This document shows, piece by piece, positions 5,312 through 48,514 of a DNA stretch of 64,000 bases. The notes below the pieces were generated by a model. The model was given only the letters and a program-made list of their open reading frames with translations. It ran no database searches and was not told the DNA's origin. Position 1 is the stretch's first letter, and each line of letters begins with the position of its first letter. The position numbers and the translations under genes are program-made. The stretch is taken from NCBI GenBank assembly GCA_904063045.1, contig CAJFCJ010000001.1:1116001-1180000 (forward strand). The letters are read 5' to 3'. Source of the DNA: Dimorphilus gyrociliatus (Eukaryota > Animalia > Annelida).

Positions 5312-8300
5312 ATGGATAGTCAACAGCCTATAATAAAAATTCAAGAAGGAAGTTTGTATTTACTGTTTCACTAAGTTTGAAATATAATTAGGGTTATTTA
5401 AATTTAGCGGAGAAAGGACAAGTCAATCCTGCTTACGAAGAAGATGAAGATGATATAACTTTTGGGCCGCAATTTCCTCGAGGGCGAAGTGTTTCTCGCT
5501 TAGAATTTGATGATCCGCCTGAAATTCATGACCCCGTAAACGGTCAGCACAACCTAGAAGTGCCAGAAGGTATTAATTTTTTCCGTCTAAGGTTTCGTCC
5601 AAATTGATTACAAGATGCCAGTCGGTGAAATGTCAAAGCGACGAGCATCGAGTTTCGAACGTTTCGAAATGATGGAACTCACTAGACCCCTAATTTCAGT
5701 TGAACCCGGTGGAAGATTGAGCATCAGAACCAGTAGTACAAGTTCTGGAAAAGAAACTCTCGCTTTACCAAGTTTACTTTCTGCAAGATCCAGCTTCTCT
5801 GTGTTTGATAATGAAGATGACGAAGTGTGAGATATTGTCTTGAAAATAATAAAAAATAATTTCATCCTACGCTTCTAATTATTTTTCTCATTTTTAAGTT
5901 CCTTTTGTCTTCTTTTACAGCAGTCACTCTGCAGTCTCATCAGCACTGAGTGAAAAATTAAAAGATCTTGTTCGAAAATTCGAAAATCGTACTGAGCGTT
6001 TTAAAGAAAAAACTCTTCAACCTCCTACACCGTCAACTAGCCCAGACGCTAAATCAGCTATTTCAAATGTTTCCAGTAATGCAGAATTGGATGTTCCTCA
6101 AGCTCGTGGGCGACTTTCATCAATCTTTACTGCAGTTAGCTCTAATTCCGGAGCTGATGACGCAATGAAAGAACAAAAGTACATCGGATCAGGAAAATTT
6201 CGAATAAAAGTACCAAAATTCCTATATAAAATATACTTCTTTCTCTTTCTGAAAACAATTGATCCGCAAAGTAAGTGCTATAGTTGTCTTTTGATTTATA
6301 TCATATCCAGTTTCTCTTTACCTACTAGATAAACTCTATTATATTTGGTTGCTAATAGTGACTGTAGCGTTTATGTATAACTGTTTGGTAATGACTCTTA
6401 GGGCAGCTTTCAAAAGAGGCTATTATTACGACGATGGCTCTTATATGCGATACCGAACAACATGCGATCCGTTAAATAAAACCAATTGTTCAACAATTCT
6501 TGAAAATTTACCTCTTCCCTTCCATGAAGGATATGAAACAGACGAGAATCGCATATACTGGTGGCTTGGAGATTATTTTTGTGATTTTTTATATCTTATG
6601 GATATACTCTTTGTAAAATCAAGAATTCGATTTGTTAAAAATGGTTTAGTTCAAGTAAATTTCCTATTTTTATAGATATTCACTCCACTTTTTTAACTAT
6701 ACCTTTACGGCTAATTTATTTTTTTTTTGTGTTAAATATAGCAAGATCGAAAGGAATGTGCAAAACATTATTTTAAGAAGATCAACTTTAAAGTAGGTTT
6801 ATTTTTATGTATTTTAGTTTTTTTTTTAATACAATATTTAAAAAAAATGTGGGAAATGATTAATATCCAGTATATGTTTTTAACACTAAAAGATGGATAT
6901 ATTATGCCTTACACCAACCGATTTATTCTACTTTGTTCCTGCGTTCGATTATAACCCTTTACTAAGATTTCCTCGAATGTTAAAGGTATGGATTAAGTTT
7001 TTTTCTCAATTCTAAAATAAATTACAATGGAAAATTTTCATAAGATTCACACTTTTTGGGATTTTTTCGACCGAATGGATCAAGCAGCAAGATCAGCTCA
7101 TATCGTAAGAGTTATTAGAACTTTGACGTATATGGTTTTCCTTATACACATTGAGGCATGTGGCTATTACTCTATGTCCGCCTATGAAGGCTTGAAGCGA
7201 AATGCTTGGGTGTACGATGCTGAAGGAGTAGCTTATATAAGATGCATCTATCTCGCCACAAAAACTGCAACATCCATAGGAAATAATCCCAGACCTGTTA
7301 ATAAAGAAGAATGGGTGTTTATGACTTTCTATTGGCTATCAGGCGTTTTTGTTTTCGCTATTCTTATAGGACAAATTCGAGATATATTTCAGTCAGCAGG
7401 ATACGCTAAAACGTACTATAGAAAAAGTATGGATCAAACAATTCAATATATGAAAACGTTAAACTTACCTAAGGAATTACAAGATCGCGTAAGGATGTGG
7501 TTCAATTATAATTGGGAACATCAAAAAACTCTGAACGAAAACTTTCTTTTGGAAGCTTTACCGAAAAAGATGAAAGCTGATCTAGCGATTCATGTTCACT
7601 ATGACATACTTAGTAAAGTGTCATTGTTTCAGGATTGCGACAAGAATTTGTTATACGACCTTGTGCTCAAGCTACAACCACAGCTTTTCCTTCCCAACGA
7701 TTATATTTGTCGTAAAGGAGAAGTTGGAACGGAAATGTATATTGTTATGAGTGGAATCATTGAAGTTGTAGGGGGGCCAAACAATAATACTGTATTCGCC
7801 ACATTACAATCTGGTTCAGGTGCGTAATTCAGCCTAATATATAAATATTGATAATACATTATTGATTGAAAATTATTTAGGCAATTAGCAATTAAATTGT
7901 TTAATTTCAGTATTTGGTGAAATATCCCTCCTGGCTTTGGCAGGTGGAAACAGGCGGACAGCAGATGTTCGTTCAAAAGGTTTTTCTCAACTTTTTATAT
8001 TATGCAAAGCGGATTTCGAAGAAGCCATGATGGATTACCCGACTGCTTTAAAAATTCTAAAGAAAAGAGCAAGAAGGAAAATTGCTGCTAATGCTAAACA
8101 TGAAAAAAAGGCTAAGGGTAAAGATGAGGGCGATAAAATGATAAGCGAAGAGGTTATTAAATCTAGACCTGATACTCCAAAATTGCTTAAAACAGTCGTA
8201 AGGATGGTTGAACCAAATTCAAAAGTCATAGATATGCTATCAAGTGGTATGAAAAAATCAACAGAGAAACAAAACGAAAAGAAAGACGAAATACCAGACG

Positions 8301-38106: not shown

Positions 38107-41100
38107 ATGGCTAAACAAACAGGTTCAATCCAAGTGATTCGCCAACTTTTTGATTTTCAATCTGAAGATAAAAATCGTACAATTGAAAGATTGGAGCTTT
38201 TAGATTATGTTTCAAAAGCAGTAGTAAGTGCCATGATAATTCAATTTGCTTTGAAAATGTGAAATGTTGTATATACATCTAATTCTGTATCGAAACTTAA
38301 TTTTGGAATGCTTGTACTTTGTTCTCTTGATATAATTTCATCCCAGCTTTGATAGCTATGTCATCACTCATACCTCAGTGTAGAATTCTTTTATTAATCT
38401 TTTAAAATATTTCATATAGCCTCTTAAAAATATTTTTAATTATTTTTCAGCTTGATTTAGATACTTCCATTCTTAGAATATACGGTACAAACAGCCTAAC
38501 TCAGGAAAAAATGGCTTTTGAACTAAGATCGTTAGGTGTAAAGAGTGATGCGGTTGAATTAGAAGATACTCTTTTAAGAGTTCGAGGCATGACGTGCCAA
38601 TCTTGCGTACACGGAATAGAATCAAACATTTCTCAAATGAAAGGTGTCGAAAGTATAAAAGTCAGCTTGGAAGAAGAGTCTGCTTTTGTAAAGTATGATG
38701 TAAGATTTATTTCACCTTTAAATATTCGTAATGCAATTGACGATATGGGCTTCGACTGTTCATTAACAAGACAAACAACAGTTATCGATATCGAAGGAAT
38801 GACATGTAATTCTTGTGTTAAGAATATTGAAAATACCATTTCAAACGCAAAGGGCATTTTGAATATTAAAGTATCACTTGAAAATAAAGAAGGTATTTTT
38901 ACTTTCGATCCAGAATTAACGCACCCCGAAGCTGTAGCCGATGCTATTGATGACATGGGCTTTGACGCATCTGTCAATGTTAAAAAGAGTTTATTACAAA
39001 GTGATAATCAGGATAATAAAGCCTCATGTACTATAAATATAGAAGGTATGACATGTAACTCATGCGTTAAACATATAGAAGGAACAATGAGTGGTGAATT
39101 AGGTGTTAAACTTATAAACGTCAGCTTAATCGATAAAAATGCCGTTGTTACATTCGATCCAAGTAAAACTTCTCCAGCAGAAATTGCTGATAAAATTGAT
39201 GATATGGGATTCGAGGCCTCTGTATTCGGCCAAGAATCAAGTAAGAAATCAAATAACGTTGCTGCTGAATCTGTCAGTATTGAGATGGAGCCATTAGTGA
39301 AAAACAATCATAAAAATAAATATTCTAAATGTATTCTTTCTGTAAGAGGAATGACTTGTAGTTCTTGTGTTTCTGCTATTGAAAAAGGCTTAATGAAAGT
39401 TCTAGGCATAGAAAACGTGCTGGTAGCTTTAATGGCTGAAAGAGCCGAAATAACTTATGATGATGATATCTTAACCCCTAAAGAAATTGAAAATTGTATT
39501 GAAGACTTAGGTTTCGAGGCTTGTGTAACAGAAACAAAATTAGACAATGTAGTAGATTTAAAGGTAATGGAAGAGTTTATAAAATAATTGAATAGTTGAA
39601 TATAATGGTTGATATTACATTTTAACAGATTCAGGGTATGACCTGTTCTTCATGCGTTCATAACATCGAATCAAATTTAAGGAAAAAAATTGGCATCGTA
39701 GATGTTAAAGTATCACTTGCAACTTCCAGCGGAAAAATTACCTATGACCCTTCCAATACGGGACCGCGCACTATTATCGAAATAATTGAAAGCTTAGGCC
39801 ACCCTTGCGAATTATCAACAGACGACAATAAAGGATTAGATGTTAAAGCTCATAGAAAAATAACAAAAAAGTAAGACTACTGTCATATTTTTGAAATTTA
39901 ATAACAATTTTCTTTTTCAAACTTTATTTAGATGGAGAAATTCATTCCTCATTGCTTTGTTTTTCGGTTTACCATGTATGATTCTTATGATTTATTTTAT
40001 GATCGATCGATCTCGAGCAAAAGCAGAAGCCAAAAAGAACAATACAACTCTACCTGTTCATTATGGTTTAGTCGTTCCTGGTTTATCAATAGAAAATCTT
40101 GTGATGTTTTGTTTAGCTACACCAGTTCAAATTTGTGGTGGATGGCAATTTTATATTCATGCTTGGGCAGCTTTAAAGCATAGGACCACTAATATGGATG
40201 TGTTAGTTGTCTTAGCTACAAGTATCGCTTATCTTTATTCCTTTATTGTTGTTCTTGTTGCAATTTGCTTATCCGAACCTTTCTCTCCTAAAACGTTTTT
40301 TGACACACCACCCATGCTCTTCACTTTTATTGGACTTGGAAGATGGTTAGAACATATTGCCAAAGGTAAAACTTCTGAAGCATTGGCCAAACTTATGTCA
40401 CTTCAAGTAGCAGAAGCTATGTTGGTGAAGATGGGACCAAACGGAGACGTTATTAGTGAGTCTATTGTTGATGTAAAATTGATTCAGAGAGGAGATATTC
40501 TTAAAGTTACGCCTGGTACAAAGGTACCAGTGGATGGTCGTGTTGTCGAAGGAAGCTCGTCATGCGATGAAAGTATGATAACAGGAGAAAGTATGCCTGT
40601 CCCCAAAAATCCTGGATCAGATGTCATTGGCGGAAGCTTAAATCAGAATGGAAGTCTTTTTATAAGAGCAACTCATGTTGGTTCGGATAGTGCGCTATCA
40701 CAAATAGTTAGACTCGTTGAAGAGGCTCAGACTTCTAAAGCTCCTATACAAGCACTAGCCGATAGAATTGCTGGACTGTTTGTTCCAATTATCATAGGAT
40801 TATCATCTGTTACTCTAATAGGATGGGTTATTATTGGGTATTATAATACAGATATTATTGATGCGAATCATGAAGAGCGAGATAAGAACCGTCATGAAGT
40901 AATATGGGAACACGCTTTTAGGTTTGCAATTACAGTTTTATGTATCGCGTGCCCCTGTGCTTTAGGTCTTGCCACCCCAACGGCTGTTATGGTTGGCACT
41001 GGTGTTGGTGCAACTAATGGAATACTTATAAAAGGTGGAGAGCCTTTAGAAACAGCCCACAAAGTCAATACTTTTGTTTTTGACAAGACTGGAACACTTA

Positions 41101-42596
41101 CATATGGAACCCCTAGAGTATCGAAAGTCATGATTATCGTCCCTGAAAGTCAATTTTCGTTTATGAAGATTATAGCCATTGTAGGCACAGCGGAATCAAG
41201 CAGTGAACATCCTATAGCATCATCTATCGTTAAATATGCAAAGCAGTTAATCGGATCGGAGACATTAGGAACTCCTAGTGATTTTCAAGCCATACCTGGC
41301 TGTGGTCTCAAATGTAATGTTAGCAAAATTAGTCAATTTCTTGGAAACACTCCAAATCCAACGGATGATGATATAAACTGTGAAGTCACAATTGGAGAAA
41401 CTATTGTCGACAGTATTTGCCTGACAGCTGCAACTCCTGTAGAAGAGAGTGATACTGTTTATTCAGTTTTAATAGGTAATAGGGAGTGGATGAAGCGAAA
41501 TGGCCTTCAAGTAACTGATGAACTTGAAGAATCGATGAAAAAGACAGAAGAAAAAGGTCACACTGCTATTATATGTGCTGTAGATGGTATAATTGTAGGA
41601 ATGATAGGTGTCGCAGATTCTGTGAAGGCAGAGGCTCATTTGGCTATTCATGCTTTAAAACAATTAAATCTAAATGTTATTTTGTTAACTGGTGACAATG
41701 TGAGAACTGCTCAAGCTATTGCTAAACAAGTAGGAATTGACACAGTTTTTGCTGAGGTATTACCGTCTCATAAAGTAGAAAAGATAAGACAACTGCAAGA
41801 TTCACAATTGAAAGTTGCAATGGTTGGTGACGGAGTAAACGATTCGCCAGCATTAGCTCAGGCGGATGTAGGAATTGCTATAGGTACTGGTACGGACGTT
41901 GCTGTCGAGGCTGCTGATATGGTATTAATACGAGTTAGTATTCTTTCATTATGATAATAAAGTGGTGTTTATTAGGATAAAAGACAGTGATTAAAATAAG
42001 TTTTTATTGCAGAATGACTTATTGGATGTCTTTAATGCGATAGAATTATCAAAGAAAACTGTTAGACGAATAAGGATTAATTTTATCGCAGCTACAGTTT
42101 ATAATCTTGTCGGAATACCAATAGCAGCAGGAATATTTCTCCCGATTGGCTTATCCTTACAACCATGGATGGCATCGGCTGCCATGGCCTCTTCATCTCT
42201 TTCCGTCGTCTTCTCTTCGTTATTGCTTAAATTGTAGGACAGTTAAACTATTAGACTGTGCATTATGACTAATAATCATTTTTAATCATTCTTCTTCAGG
42301 TGGAGAAAGAAGAAACGACAAGATTTAATAACTTCAGAATATTTTCATCTTTATGAAAATGATCAGAGCAATGATCGACAAGTTGAATTGCATAGAGGCC
42401 TTTCAGTAAAGTTAATTAACCTATAATTATCGCTTTTACTAACAATTAGAATATATTTTAGAATAATATTAAGCTCAGATCAAGTTCAGCTTCTCCGTCC
42501 AAATTTGGTAAAATAAAAAAGTTCGCATCTTCGCCTACGGATGGTCAATCACTCTTATCTAACGATAATCTAGATCGTGAAATGGATCTACTATAA
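38107..42596 (+). CDS. ATP7: Copper-transporting P1B ATPase (ATP7A/B orthologue), multi-exon
   Basis: Five GMTCxSC metal-binding domains, TGES, CPC, DKTGT, SEHP, GDGVND and a C-terminal dileucine (EMDLL*). A 117-nt exon (38107-38223) splices in frame to 38451. Confidence 0.96.
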
Positions 42597-43215: not shown

Positions 43216-44138
43216 TTATTTAATTTCAGATGCTTTAAGTTGAACTAAACATAGATTGTAAAAAGAGTTTGGCATAAACGATTCCAAGGAGCGCCAGCAC
43301 AAGAAGCCGCTTTCTGTTAATTCCCTAGGAGATTGATTTGGTCCGTAATAGTGAGGATCCTGTAAAAATATAATGATTATTAAAAGGTACAGTCAGAGTA
43401 TGCCCTTTTAAACAAATAGTGTACTTACTAAAACCAATAAATAGGCGTTTTCTTTACTTTGGCAAACGCCTAATATCCCTTTAGAAGCATTATCGCTGTC
43501 ACCACCTAAAAAAAACGAGAATTCATTTTTAGCATGCTGTTTTTATTTTTAGAAATTGCATAGCTACCCATCATTATTGGACACCCATACTTTTCAAAGT
43601 GATTTATGATAGTTGGAAGAAAATTCTTTAGATCACTACCTTGTTTAATATGAACAATTTTGCAGGATGTCTAAATTGTTAAACAGTATAGAAAGATTGT
43701 TCAGGCTGTTTAGGTAGTACTTACATCATAAAAATAATCTACGCACATAGCCACTTCTATACTTCCAATCCATGTTTTGGACCCAATAAACGAAGGTGCT
43801 TTATCATTCATATCAACTAATGATTCTTGTATCCCATCTAAAGGTGGAACTAATTCTGGGCAGTCCCTTTGAAATTTCAACCATGAGCACAACGTTTGTA
43901 AAGTTCGATAACCACAACCCCAGCCCTGAAAAGATTGGTTTCTAGACTGAAAATTTTAGAAATTAATTATGCTTACGCGATCATCAAATCCATCGCAGCC
44001 GTAATGATAATATAAATAGTCGCCTTTAACTAATTCTAAAACTGATATCTCATTCGCCGATTCTTCGGGAGGTTTTTTTAATTGTTCATGAATATTCTTT
44101 AATAGCTGACAATCAACACATTCCAAATTATTGTTCAT
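43216..44138 (-). CDS. UFSP1: UFM1-specific peptidase 1, multi-exon
   Basis: YLYYHYGCDGFDDR|GWGCGYRTLQTLCSW, WIGSIE, GGDSDNASKGILG (UFSP1-type) and catalytic DPH. Confidence 0.88.
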
Positions 44139-44834
44139 AATAAAAATAATCAGACGAACTTAAAATTTCGCACGAAAATGAGAAAAATACATTTCCTGTA
44201 GAGGATCAAATAGGAGTATAGAGGGCACACTTGTCAATGTTTGGTTTTTTTTTTGCCCAAGTATTACTTCGTAGCTATTGGTATTTGCATGTTTATTCTA
44301 ACTATATCGATAACTTTGCAGCTGAGATTAAATGATAAAATTTATCCTTCAAATTGATTGATTATATTAAATTATACCCCTTGTAATATATTCATTGAAG
44401 ACTTATGTACCCTGTCATTAAGTGTTAATGAGGACAATCAGCTATTTAACAATGAACACTTTACACAACCTACTCCATTAGACTATTTTTTCAATAGATC
44501 GTTAATTATTCTATGCTTTATTTCATTTTTGAAAAGAAAATAAGGGTTATAGAGTATGCAATTTATATTAAAAACAGTTTAGAATTAATAATAATGGAAA
44601 TCTATACACGTTTCACAGCCGTATGAGGAGAAAAGTTCCATGTGGTTCTTCCAATACAAATTTACATTTTGTAACCATACAAATACACCTATATATATAC
44701 AATAAAAAATGAAATATTATACAAAATCTTCATGCTTTCATATGCATTTAAAAAATATGTAAATTAGATTCTTATAAAAAAATATTGCAAAATAGAATTC
44801 TTTTTTTTTTTGATTTTCTTCTCTAATTTTCATT

Positions 44835-45287
44835 CTAGAAAAATAAGTATTTTCTAAGACGTTTCCATAGTCTCTTCAGAAAATTTCGCCGGAAGAAAGA
44901 ACGCTTTGAGCGTCTCTTTCTTATTTTGTTCTTGGTCATATGAGTTGTGTCAATTATGTAAACGTATCCCTTTTTCCCTGTCATATTACTTTGGCGATGA
45001 ATATTGAATTTATGATTTTTTGGTAGAATTTTCAATAGATGATCTTCTGCAAATTTAGTATTATCTGTTTCTGCATAATACTTGCAGCACTTCTTAAATT
45101 CCTTATATTGACGTATTCTTGTGTTCGGATCCAGGTGATTCGTTGCACCAACTCTGTATAAATGGCCATTTTTCTTCAATTTCTTGGCCATTTCTCTGAA
45201 CAATATCTTCTTAGCTTTTCCATTGTTCGAAATTCGATATTTTTTGTTGATGCTTACTAGTTTTTTAAAGAAAAATCTATGTAGCAT
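44835..45287 (-). CDS. Uncharacterised basic 150-aa protein; putative circularly permuted GIY-YIG-like domain
   Basis: An intact intronless ORF that is not the antisense shadow of another gene. It carries motifs LYRVGAT…R..QY, AEDHLLK, FN and GYVYII. Confidence 0.65.
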   Translation of the reverse strand: MLHRFFFKKLVSINKKYRISNNGKAKKILFREMAKKLKKNGHLYRVGATNHLDPNTRIRQYKEFKKCCKYYAETDNTKFAEDHLLKILPKNHKFNIHRQSNMTGKKGYVYIIDTTHMTKNKIRKRRSKRSFFRRNFLKRLWKRLRKYLFF

Positions 45288-45609
45288 TTGCTGAGATGTA
45301 AGTTACTTTGTATATCATTGGAAAACCCACGCTAACCCAAGGGAATTCCGTAATGACTCATGTGGCAGTAAGACACTACTGCCATCAAGTGTATAAAAAA
45401 GCATCAATTAAATTTTAAGATTTTTAAGGATTTTTTTCACATTTCTCCAATGTTTGAATAAATAAGAAACAGTAAATTGATCAATAATTTTTTTATTTTC
45501 TTTTATCAACTTCTAACGTTTAACAATCGTTTTAAAAAAGTTATATTTAGTAGATATTTCTTATCATTTGTCTATTTATAAATCATCCAAAAAATTTTCA
45601 CAAGGCAAT

Positions 45610-45728: not shown

Positions 45729-48514
<2,786 letters not shown>

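Follow-up and report, generated by a model that had tools for sequence, protein, structure and literature searches.

A small intronless annelid gene encoding a GIY-YIG-type domain in probable circularly permuted order

The gene and its family

The window analysed here is a stretch of 64,000 nucleotides from the annelid Dimorphilus gyrociliatus (contig CAJFCJ010000001.1, positions 1,116,001 to 1,180,000 of the forward strand), taken from an assembly of 78 Mb in 349 contigs whose GC (guanine plus cytosine) content, like that of the window, is about 31%. The open reading frame (ORF) under study lies on the minus strand at 44835-45287, starts with ATG, runs for 150 codons to a stop at 44835-44837 and is intronless and complete; upstream of its ATG the frame stays open for just five extra codons. 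Pfam matches to SelO (PF02696) at 48059-48514 and to Peptidase_C78 of the UFSP type at 43713-43892 flank it on the same strand. An earlier sequence-only reading of the locus had described an intronless ORF of 150 residues between SELENOO and UFSP1, and coordinates, start, stop and neighbours all bear this out. The motif order that it listed is also exact: LYRVGAT (residues 43-49), PNTRIRQY (54-61), KYYAETDNTKFAEDHLLK (69-86), HKFNI (92-96) and KKGYVYII (105-112). It took these motifs for the parts of a GIY-YIG nuclease in circularly permuted order, and this proposal is the subject of the present report.

As about 74 open frames of at least 150 codons are expected by chance genome-wide (78 Mb, 32% GC), the length of the ORF alone is no proof of a gene, and a spurious frame in AT-rich intergenic DNA has to be considered. 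It is the existence of homologues that makes the ORF a real gene. A word search returned P0001, an orthologue that is likewise 150 residues long and 62% identical to the query in a gap-free alignment. The identity rises to 77% over residues 44-116 and falls to 42-53% in the tail and in the first 43 residues, and such a concentration in the core is, as far as an alignment can tell, the signature of selection on a domain. The gap-free orthologue of the same length, the domain-focused conservation and some 55 relatives in other animals effectively refute the spurious frame, which we regard as vanishingly improbable, and we have hardly any doubt that the ORF is a real gene.

The relatives were collected in two steps. 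A HMMER search of 1.84 billion representatives yielded 42 matches at E ≤ 1e-3, of which 39 were kept; P0002 (2,951 residues), P0005 and P0007 were rejected as repeat or low-complexity artefacts and dropped out once the family profile was refined. A further word search, with the family alignment as query, contributed 16 more members, none with a precomputed Pfam domain. Typical members comprise 80-125 residues, align over nearly their full length to query residues ~25-115 and are 29-41% identical to the query. Both a protein search and a family profile search found the ORF to be single-copy in its own genome.

All members that bear names come from Mytilus, under hypothetical or uncharacterised labels: VDI02562.1 (P0011) and P0055 in M. 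galloprovincialis, CAG2236182.1 in M. edulis, which contains the domain in two copies, and LOC134699267 in M. trossulus. No source annotates any family member, be it by a Pfam domain or by an informative name. Further members reside on contigs of 0.2-5.5 Mb, and one of 100 residues is encoded at 5926-6228 (+) of the 44-kb metagenome contig Ga0194135_10000118 as a lone ORF in 12 kb of gene-sparse DNA (36% GC); this contig looks like that of a eukaryote in the environmental sample. Given the Mytilus members, the large contigs and the gene-sparse metagenome contig, the family looks eukaryotic. The permuted domain of VDI02562.1 is fused behind ankyrin repeats, hence the domain has been recruited into larger architectures in mussels.

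A tblastn search against 50,697 phage records produced noise only, and no relative appeared in two scans of the viral contigs of IMG/VR. One pattern scan of the genomes of 185,579 prokaryotic species found no member either, which is weak evidence as the pattern was narrow. The sequence-only reading had called the gene an orphan, and this did not hold once the orthologue and about 55 relatives were found. It had also suspected an uncharacterised family in animal genomes, in keeping with the unannotated members in annelids and mussels; its suggestion of a possible virus origin gained nothing from the phage and viral searches. The survey of homologues and copy number that it proposed thus ends with some 55 relatives and a single copy in the worm's own genome.

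Relationship to the GIY-YIG superfamily

The residue counts given below are based on A2, an alignment of 35 family sequences. E81, G107 and Y110 are invariant (35/35), and at least 90% of the members keep G47, T49, R57, L84, L85, N95 and S100. R57, present in 34/34 members, lines up with the canonical Arg of SLX1, YhbQ and T5orf172. G47 is found in 34/34 and T49 in 32 members, and N95 (34/35) follows E81 at a distance of 14 residues. Position 45, which corresponds to the canonical YIG-Tyr site, is occupied by Arg in 27 members and by Tyr in 4; position 61 is Tyr in 28 and His in 5, canonical GIY-YIG proteins having His. The family consensus reads [IY]-R-V-G-A-T..P..R...Y ... Y-Y-A-x-T-x-N-M..A-E-N-x-L-L ... 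H-N-x-[QH]..S-N ... G-Y-V-Y-x-I.

Curated domain models do not recognise these proteins. Against Pfam the query gave no match to the GIY-YIG clan, no member passes a curated threshold, and PHROGs and NCBIfam returned nothing for the query. A match to NUMOD4 (PF07463; E 0.027, 15.1 bits versus a cut-off of 23.4) was discarded, being confined to the query (1/35 members) and to the poorly conserved residues 8-44. Below threshold, the 35 members matched T5orf172 ten times (best E 0.0011), GIY-YIG three times, MUG113 twice and GIY_YIG_domain once; among the other families STEEP1 appeared twice and every remaining one once. Searching the PDB sequences with the family profile placed SLX1 in three of the four top chains (7cq2, 7cq4 and 7wme), aligned over the YIG strand and the Arg helix at an E of ~1 that is not significant alone. 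By ESM features, member P0008 reached 0.97 with a T5orf172/MUG113 cluster, with which it shares 198 features, and 0.96 with GIY-YIG clusters; the query scored about 0.90. A structure search of BFVD placed a GIY-YIG protein of Yasminevirus, A0A5K0U8Q9, on top (E 0.011, probability 0.97, all others ≤0.13), yet its superposition on the model has a template modelling (TM) score of just 0.39 at 16% identity.

Most weight falls on profile comparisons by hhalign, with two template sets drawn from sampled bacterial genomes: 27 T5orf172 domains and 30 small GIY-YIG proteins, all canonical. In its native order the family aligned to the GIY-YIG set over 57 columns, beginning at the YIG strand and ending with the Glu helix, at a probability of 91% and a score of 37.3, the same level as the positive control, in which T5orf172 was compared with the GIY-YIG set (91.5%, score 40.8). 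We consider it very probable that the family is related to the GIY-YIG superfamily. The alternative that the protein has an unrelated fold and that its motifs resemble those of GIY-YIG by coincidence appears very unlikely: hhalign values of 91-96% equal those of a true relative, and the sub-threshold Pfam matches, SLX1 in the PDB search, the ESM features and the top BFVD match converge on one clan.

Two groups within the superfamily stand closest. With T5orf172/MUG113 (PF10544, PF13455) the family shares the G-x-V-Y-[VI]-I strand, the Arg helix ("DP..R"), the Glu helix and the [KR]-[IV]-G-x-T strand, in which a basic residue, Lys in T5orf172, replaces the YIG Tyr; this group also provides the commonest sub-threshold Pfam match, the best ESM match (0.97) and 92% in hhalign with the re-permuted profile described below. 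The GxVY strand comes first in T5orf172 and last in the family, and the C-terminal region of T5orf172 is replaced by a HN-x-Q-x-x-SN loop. A match to the full-length T5orf172 model (PF10544) was not found, and no member reaches its 20-bit cut-off. The small GIY-YIG proteins of the YhbQ/UPF0213 type and the SLX1 domain (PF01541) are of similar size (about 90-100 residues), and their Y-x-G-x-T...RR..[HY], strand 3 and A..E helix align with the family at 91% in native and 96% in re-permuted order. The family differs from them in its strand order, in the Arg that most members have for the YIG Tyr and in an extra N-terminal helix.

The order of the elements

AlphaFold, run on the 35-sequence alignment, produced a model with a mean predicted local distance difference test (pLDDT) value of 88.9, a predicted TM score (pTM) of 0.74 and core blocks at 94-98; the first model, from two sequences (pLDDT 65), was too weak for use. 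The predicted elements are a helix at 30-43, a strand at 44-49, a helix at 54-58, a strand at 68-74, a helix at 77-87, a loop, a strand at 107-113 and a helix at 115-148. Where canonical strand 1 would be, the model has the family-specific N-terminal element (residues 25-43; 45159-45215, on the minus strand as are all parts of the gene), whose helix 30-43 is predicted at a pLDDT of ~97 and whose hydrophobic pattern is kept family-wide. It is followed by the YIG-type strand Y-R-V-G-A-T with the Arg helix (residues 44-62; 45102-45158), aligning to YxG-T...RR..H of SLX1, YhbQ and T5orf172, and by strand 3 (CKYYAET, residues 68-74; 45066-45086), seen by both AlphaFold and hhalign. The Glu helix (FAEDHLLKIL, residues 77-87; 45027-45059) carries E81 as a candidate metal-binding residue, and the conserved loop behind it (residues 88-106; 44970-45026) has the signature HN-x-Q/H-x-x-SN with N95, S100 (34/35) and N101 (31/35). 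After this Asn loop stands the GIY-type strand G-Y-V-Y-I-I-D (residues 107-113; 44949-44969), at a pLDDT of ~98 and including the invariant G107 and Y110. Named after their canonical counterparts, the elements of the family thus run from a helix through strand 2, helix 1, strand 3, helix 2 and a loop to strand 1, whereas canonical domains begin with strand 1 and continue with strand 2, helix 1, strand 3 and helix 2.

Superposed on this model, the segment from the YIG strand through the Glu helix matched the N-terminal domain of UvrC (1ycz) over 58 residues (root-mean-square deviation 2.9, 17% identity) and I-TevI (1ln0) over 55 residues (deviation 2.9). Native-order hhalign alignments never cover the canonical first strand and begin just after it in the template; likewise the best T5orf172 match in a member spans profile positions 10-85 of 101 (E 0.076) and starts after strand 1.

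The identity of the C-terminal strand was addressed with reordered columns of A2, in which residues 104-114 were placed before 40-103. The hhalign score rose from 23.7 (23%) to 38.8 (92%) against T5orf172, from 37.3 (91%) to 48.1 (96%) against GIY-YIG, and from 22.0 (13%) to 31.8 (79%) against a Penelope/SLX1 set from the worm's own genome. None of 100 column shuffles of the strand reached the real score, whether against T5orf172 (25.5 ± 2.7, maximum 34.6, z = 5.0) or against GIY-YIG (36.0 ± 1.7, maximum 43.4, z = 7.2). Other segments placed in front (β3, β2, the loop or the N-terminal helix) brought no comparable gain, scoring 23-29 against T5orf172, 35-38 against GIY-YIG and 21-25 against Penelope/SLX1. 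By hmmsearch, re-permutation gained ~6 bits per member on average. Against T5orf172 the query scored 10.9 bits as the core alone and 23.2 bits after re-permutation; the corresponding values against GIY-YIG were 5.9 and 14.1. The register is the expected one, with K-G-Y-V-Y-I-I over K-G-H-V-Y-V-I and Y-R-V-G-A-T..D-P..R over Y-K-I-G-L-T-R-R-L-D-P-M-D-R; against the GIY-YIG set the hairpin is gap-free and G-Y-V-Y falls on the canonical GIY motif. Re-permuted, the family is collinear with canonical domains over their full extent; in native order this holds from the YIG strand on only.

These scores have to be weighed against an explanation in which no true permutation occurred: in a descendant of GIY-YIG the first strand would have disappeared, an unrelated one would have been added at the C-terminus later, and the GYVY of this strand would be convergent. 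Several observations count in its favour and against a permutation. Sequential structure searches did not recover GIY-YIG: Foldseek with the confident model found nothing in the PDB at E ≤ 0.001, re-examination of its own candidates added nothing, and the GIY-YIG matches from such searches were weak only. Short hydrophobic strands can look alike by chance, and a decoy with the strand reversed still scored 35.3 against T5orf172, an imperfect control since Y-V-Y is nearly palindromic. The weak structural matches are inconclusive rather than negative, as sequential aligners penalise permuted domains. What speaks against a lost and regained strand is that G107 and Y110 are the sole invariant residues besides E81, that the gain is strand-specific, seen with three template sets and reached by 0/100 shuffles, and that the re-permuted spacing fits the canonical hairpin without a gap against the GIY-YIG set. 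We therefore hold this explanation to be unlikely, and a true circular permutation appears probable from the alignments.

The sequence-only reading had argued that all GIY-YIG elements are present with beta1 (GYVYII) at the C-terminus after the Asn, and had proposed re-permuted profiles as a check; the rise against three template sets, unmatched by 100 shuffles, supports it. Its candidate GIY-Tyr, YIG-Gly, Arg, Glu and Asn turned out to be the invariant or near-invariant Y110, G47, R57, E81 and N95. We class the domain, by its sequence, as one of the GIY-YIG superfamily whose topology is new and which has a sequence signature of its own. Taken together, it is reasonably likely that core residues ~25-116 represent an unannotated GIY-YIG-superfamily family with circularly permuted order, situated in a real single-copy intronless gene.

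Active site, origin and genomic surroundings

GIY-YIG nucleases act in homing-endonuclease mobility, nucleotide excision repair (UvrC), Holliday-junction processing (SLX1) and Penelope retrotransposition, and to our knowledge all described members have one common element order. In the permuted domain we infer that strand 107-113 would take the place of canonical strand 1, flanked by strands 44-49 and 68-74, and that this placement would bring Y110 beside R57, E81 and N95. By analogy with I-TevI, UvrC and SLX1, E81 would hold the single catalytic metal and Y110 would be the general base that activates water; R57 may stabilise the transition state, aided by R45 at the YIG-Tyr site, with N95, S100 and N101 shaping the site. 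Nucleic acid would then be cut by the usual one-metal GIY-YIG mechanism, the annelid-specific basic tail possibly supplying non-specific nucleic-acid binding.

A permuted GIY-YIG fold could also serve as a nucleic-acid-binding or regulatory scaffold with no nuclease activity. Arg takes the place of the YIG Tyr in 27/35 members and the protein is extremely basic (pI, the isoelectric point, 10.9; 44 K+R versus 8 D+E), as such a scaffold might be. Yet T5orf172-type domains also have Lys at the YIG-Tyr position, and Tyr, Arg, Glu and Asn are strictly kept at 29-41% identity, which is how an active site behaves. We judge the scaffold to be rather unlikely, and by analogy with the characterised enzymes the balance tips slightly towards an active nuclease.

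The basicity of the protein is greatest at its ends. Residues 1-24 (45216-45287) contain 7 K+R and no D/E, are predicted at a pLDDT of ~52 and are poorly conserved, with 42% identity to P0001; this segment could be a targeting or nucleic-acid-binding one. The C-terminal helix (residues 117-150; 44838-44939) has 16 K+R, no D/E and a pI of 12. Such a basic tail occurs in the two annelid proteins and in no other aligned member, and its hydrophobic positions are kept between both. The tail had been described as very basic and amphipathic; the first part of this description stands, and the second does not, as the hydrophobic moment of 0.42 is reached by 70% of shuffled tails. A role in non-specific nucleic-acid binding or localisation would be plausible.

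As to its origin, tandem duplication is the usual route to circular permutation, and the permutation would most plausibly have arisen in this way, tandem arrays of the unit persisting in mussel proteins. P0003 contains three units and P0004 and P0009 (Mytilus edulis) contain two each, every unit being complete and in permuted order. This shows that tandem duplication occurs in the family; which arrangement came first does not follow from it. P0003 and P0032 are two separate family genes on one 817,494-bp ENA contig, a pairing that points to local expansion in some genomes, probably molluscan ones. In its fullest form our proposal is that a circularly permuted GIY-YIG nuclease family is recognised here for the first time, catalytically competent, with a C-terminal GIY strand, a probable origin in tandem duplication and a distribution as small intronless genes in lophotrochozoans (annelids and mussels) and environmental eukaryotes, and we lean modestly towards it. 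Full-text literature searches on GIY-YIG and permutation turned up no account of a GIY-YIG fold that is permuted internally. In the Penelope elements called "permuted" (PMC8557442), it is the nuclease and reverse-transcriptase domains that are arranged differently; the difference does not lie inside the nuclease fold.

If the proposal is true, the active site tolerates re-threading of the strand that bears the catalytic Tyr, the failure of standard domain models and sequential fold searches to detect these proteins is explained, and annelid and mollusc genomes gain an unannotated candidate nuclease. As no member now bears a domain annotation, the family needs a profile of its own.

Searched in six frames, the Dimorphilus genome matches the canonical GIY-YIG model of Pfam ~43 times, mostly in long frames (up to 791-883 residues) and often clustered several per contig (for instance G000:C59:131096-131353, and contigs C41, C46, C107, C162 and C254). 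Their Cys-rich insert between GIY and YIG makes them look like Penelope-like retroelements. The Penelope nucleases belong to the same superfamily and the same genome, but they are multi-copy, in canonical order and located inside long frames that contain reverse transcriptase; they carry the Cys-rich insert that the family lacks and are farther from it than the YhbQ and T5orf172 types. Given the greater distance and the missing insert, we reject a recent origin from a Penelope element. Among the top matches the sole canonical GIY-YIG sequence that is not of the Penelope type is an exon at G000:C21:190152-190343 (+) with an SLX1-type segment, YIGFTVNPNRRIHQHN, which presumably belongs to the worm's SLX1 gene.

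Around the ORF, the minus strand between 44300 and 45620 contains just two AATAAA hexamers. One (44517-44522) is situated 313 nucleotides past the stop and is a candidate poly(A) signal of the gene. The other (45492-45497) is ~115 nucleotides downstream of the SECIS (selenocysteine insertion sequence) region of SELENOO and 205 nucleotides upstream of the ATG of the ORF, and may mark the end of the upstream transcript. Their positions fit a transcription unit separate from SELENOO, the number expected by chance in this interval also being ~2. On the plus strand, a long open exon at 39891-42237 with the CPC, DKTGT and GDGVND motifs, hallmarks of P-type ATPases, is convergent with the UFSP-type gene and apparently encodes part of a copper-transporting ATPase.
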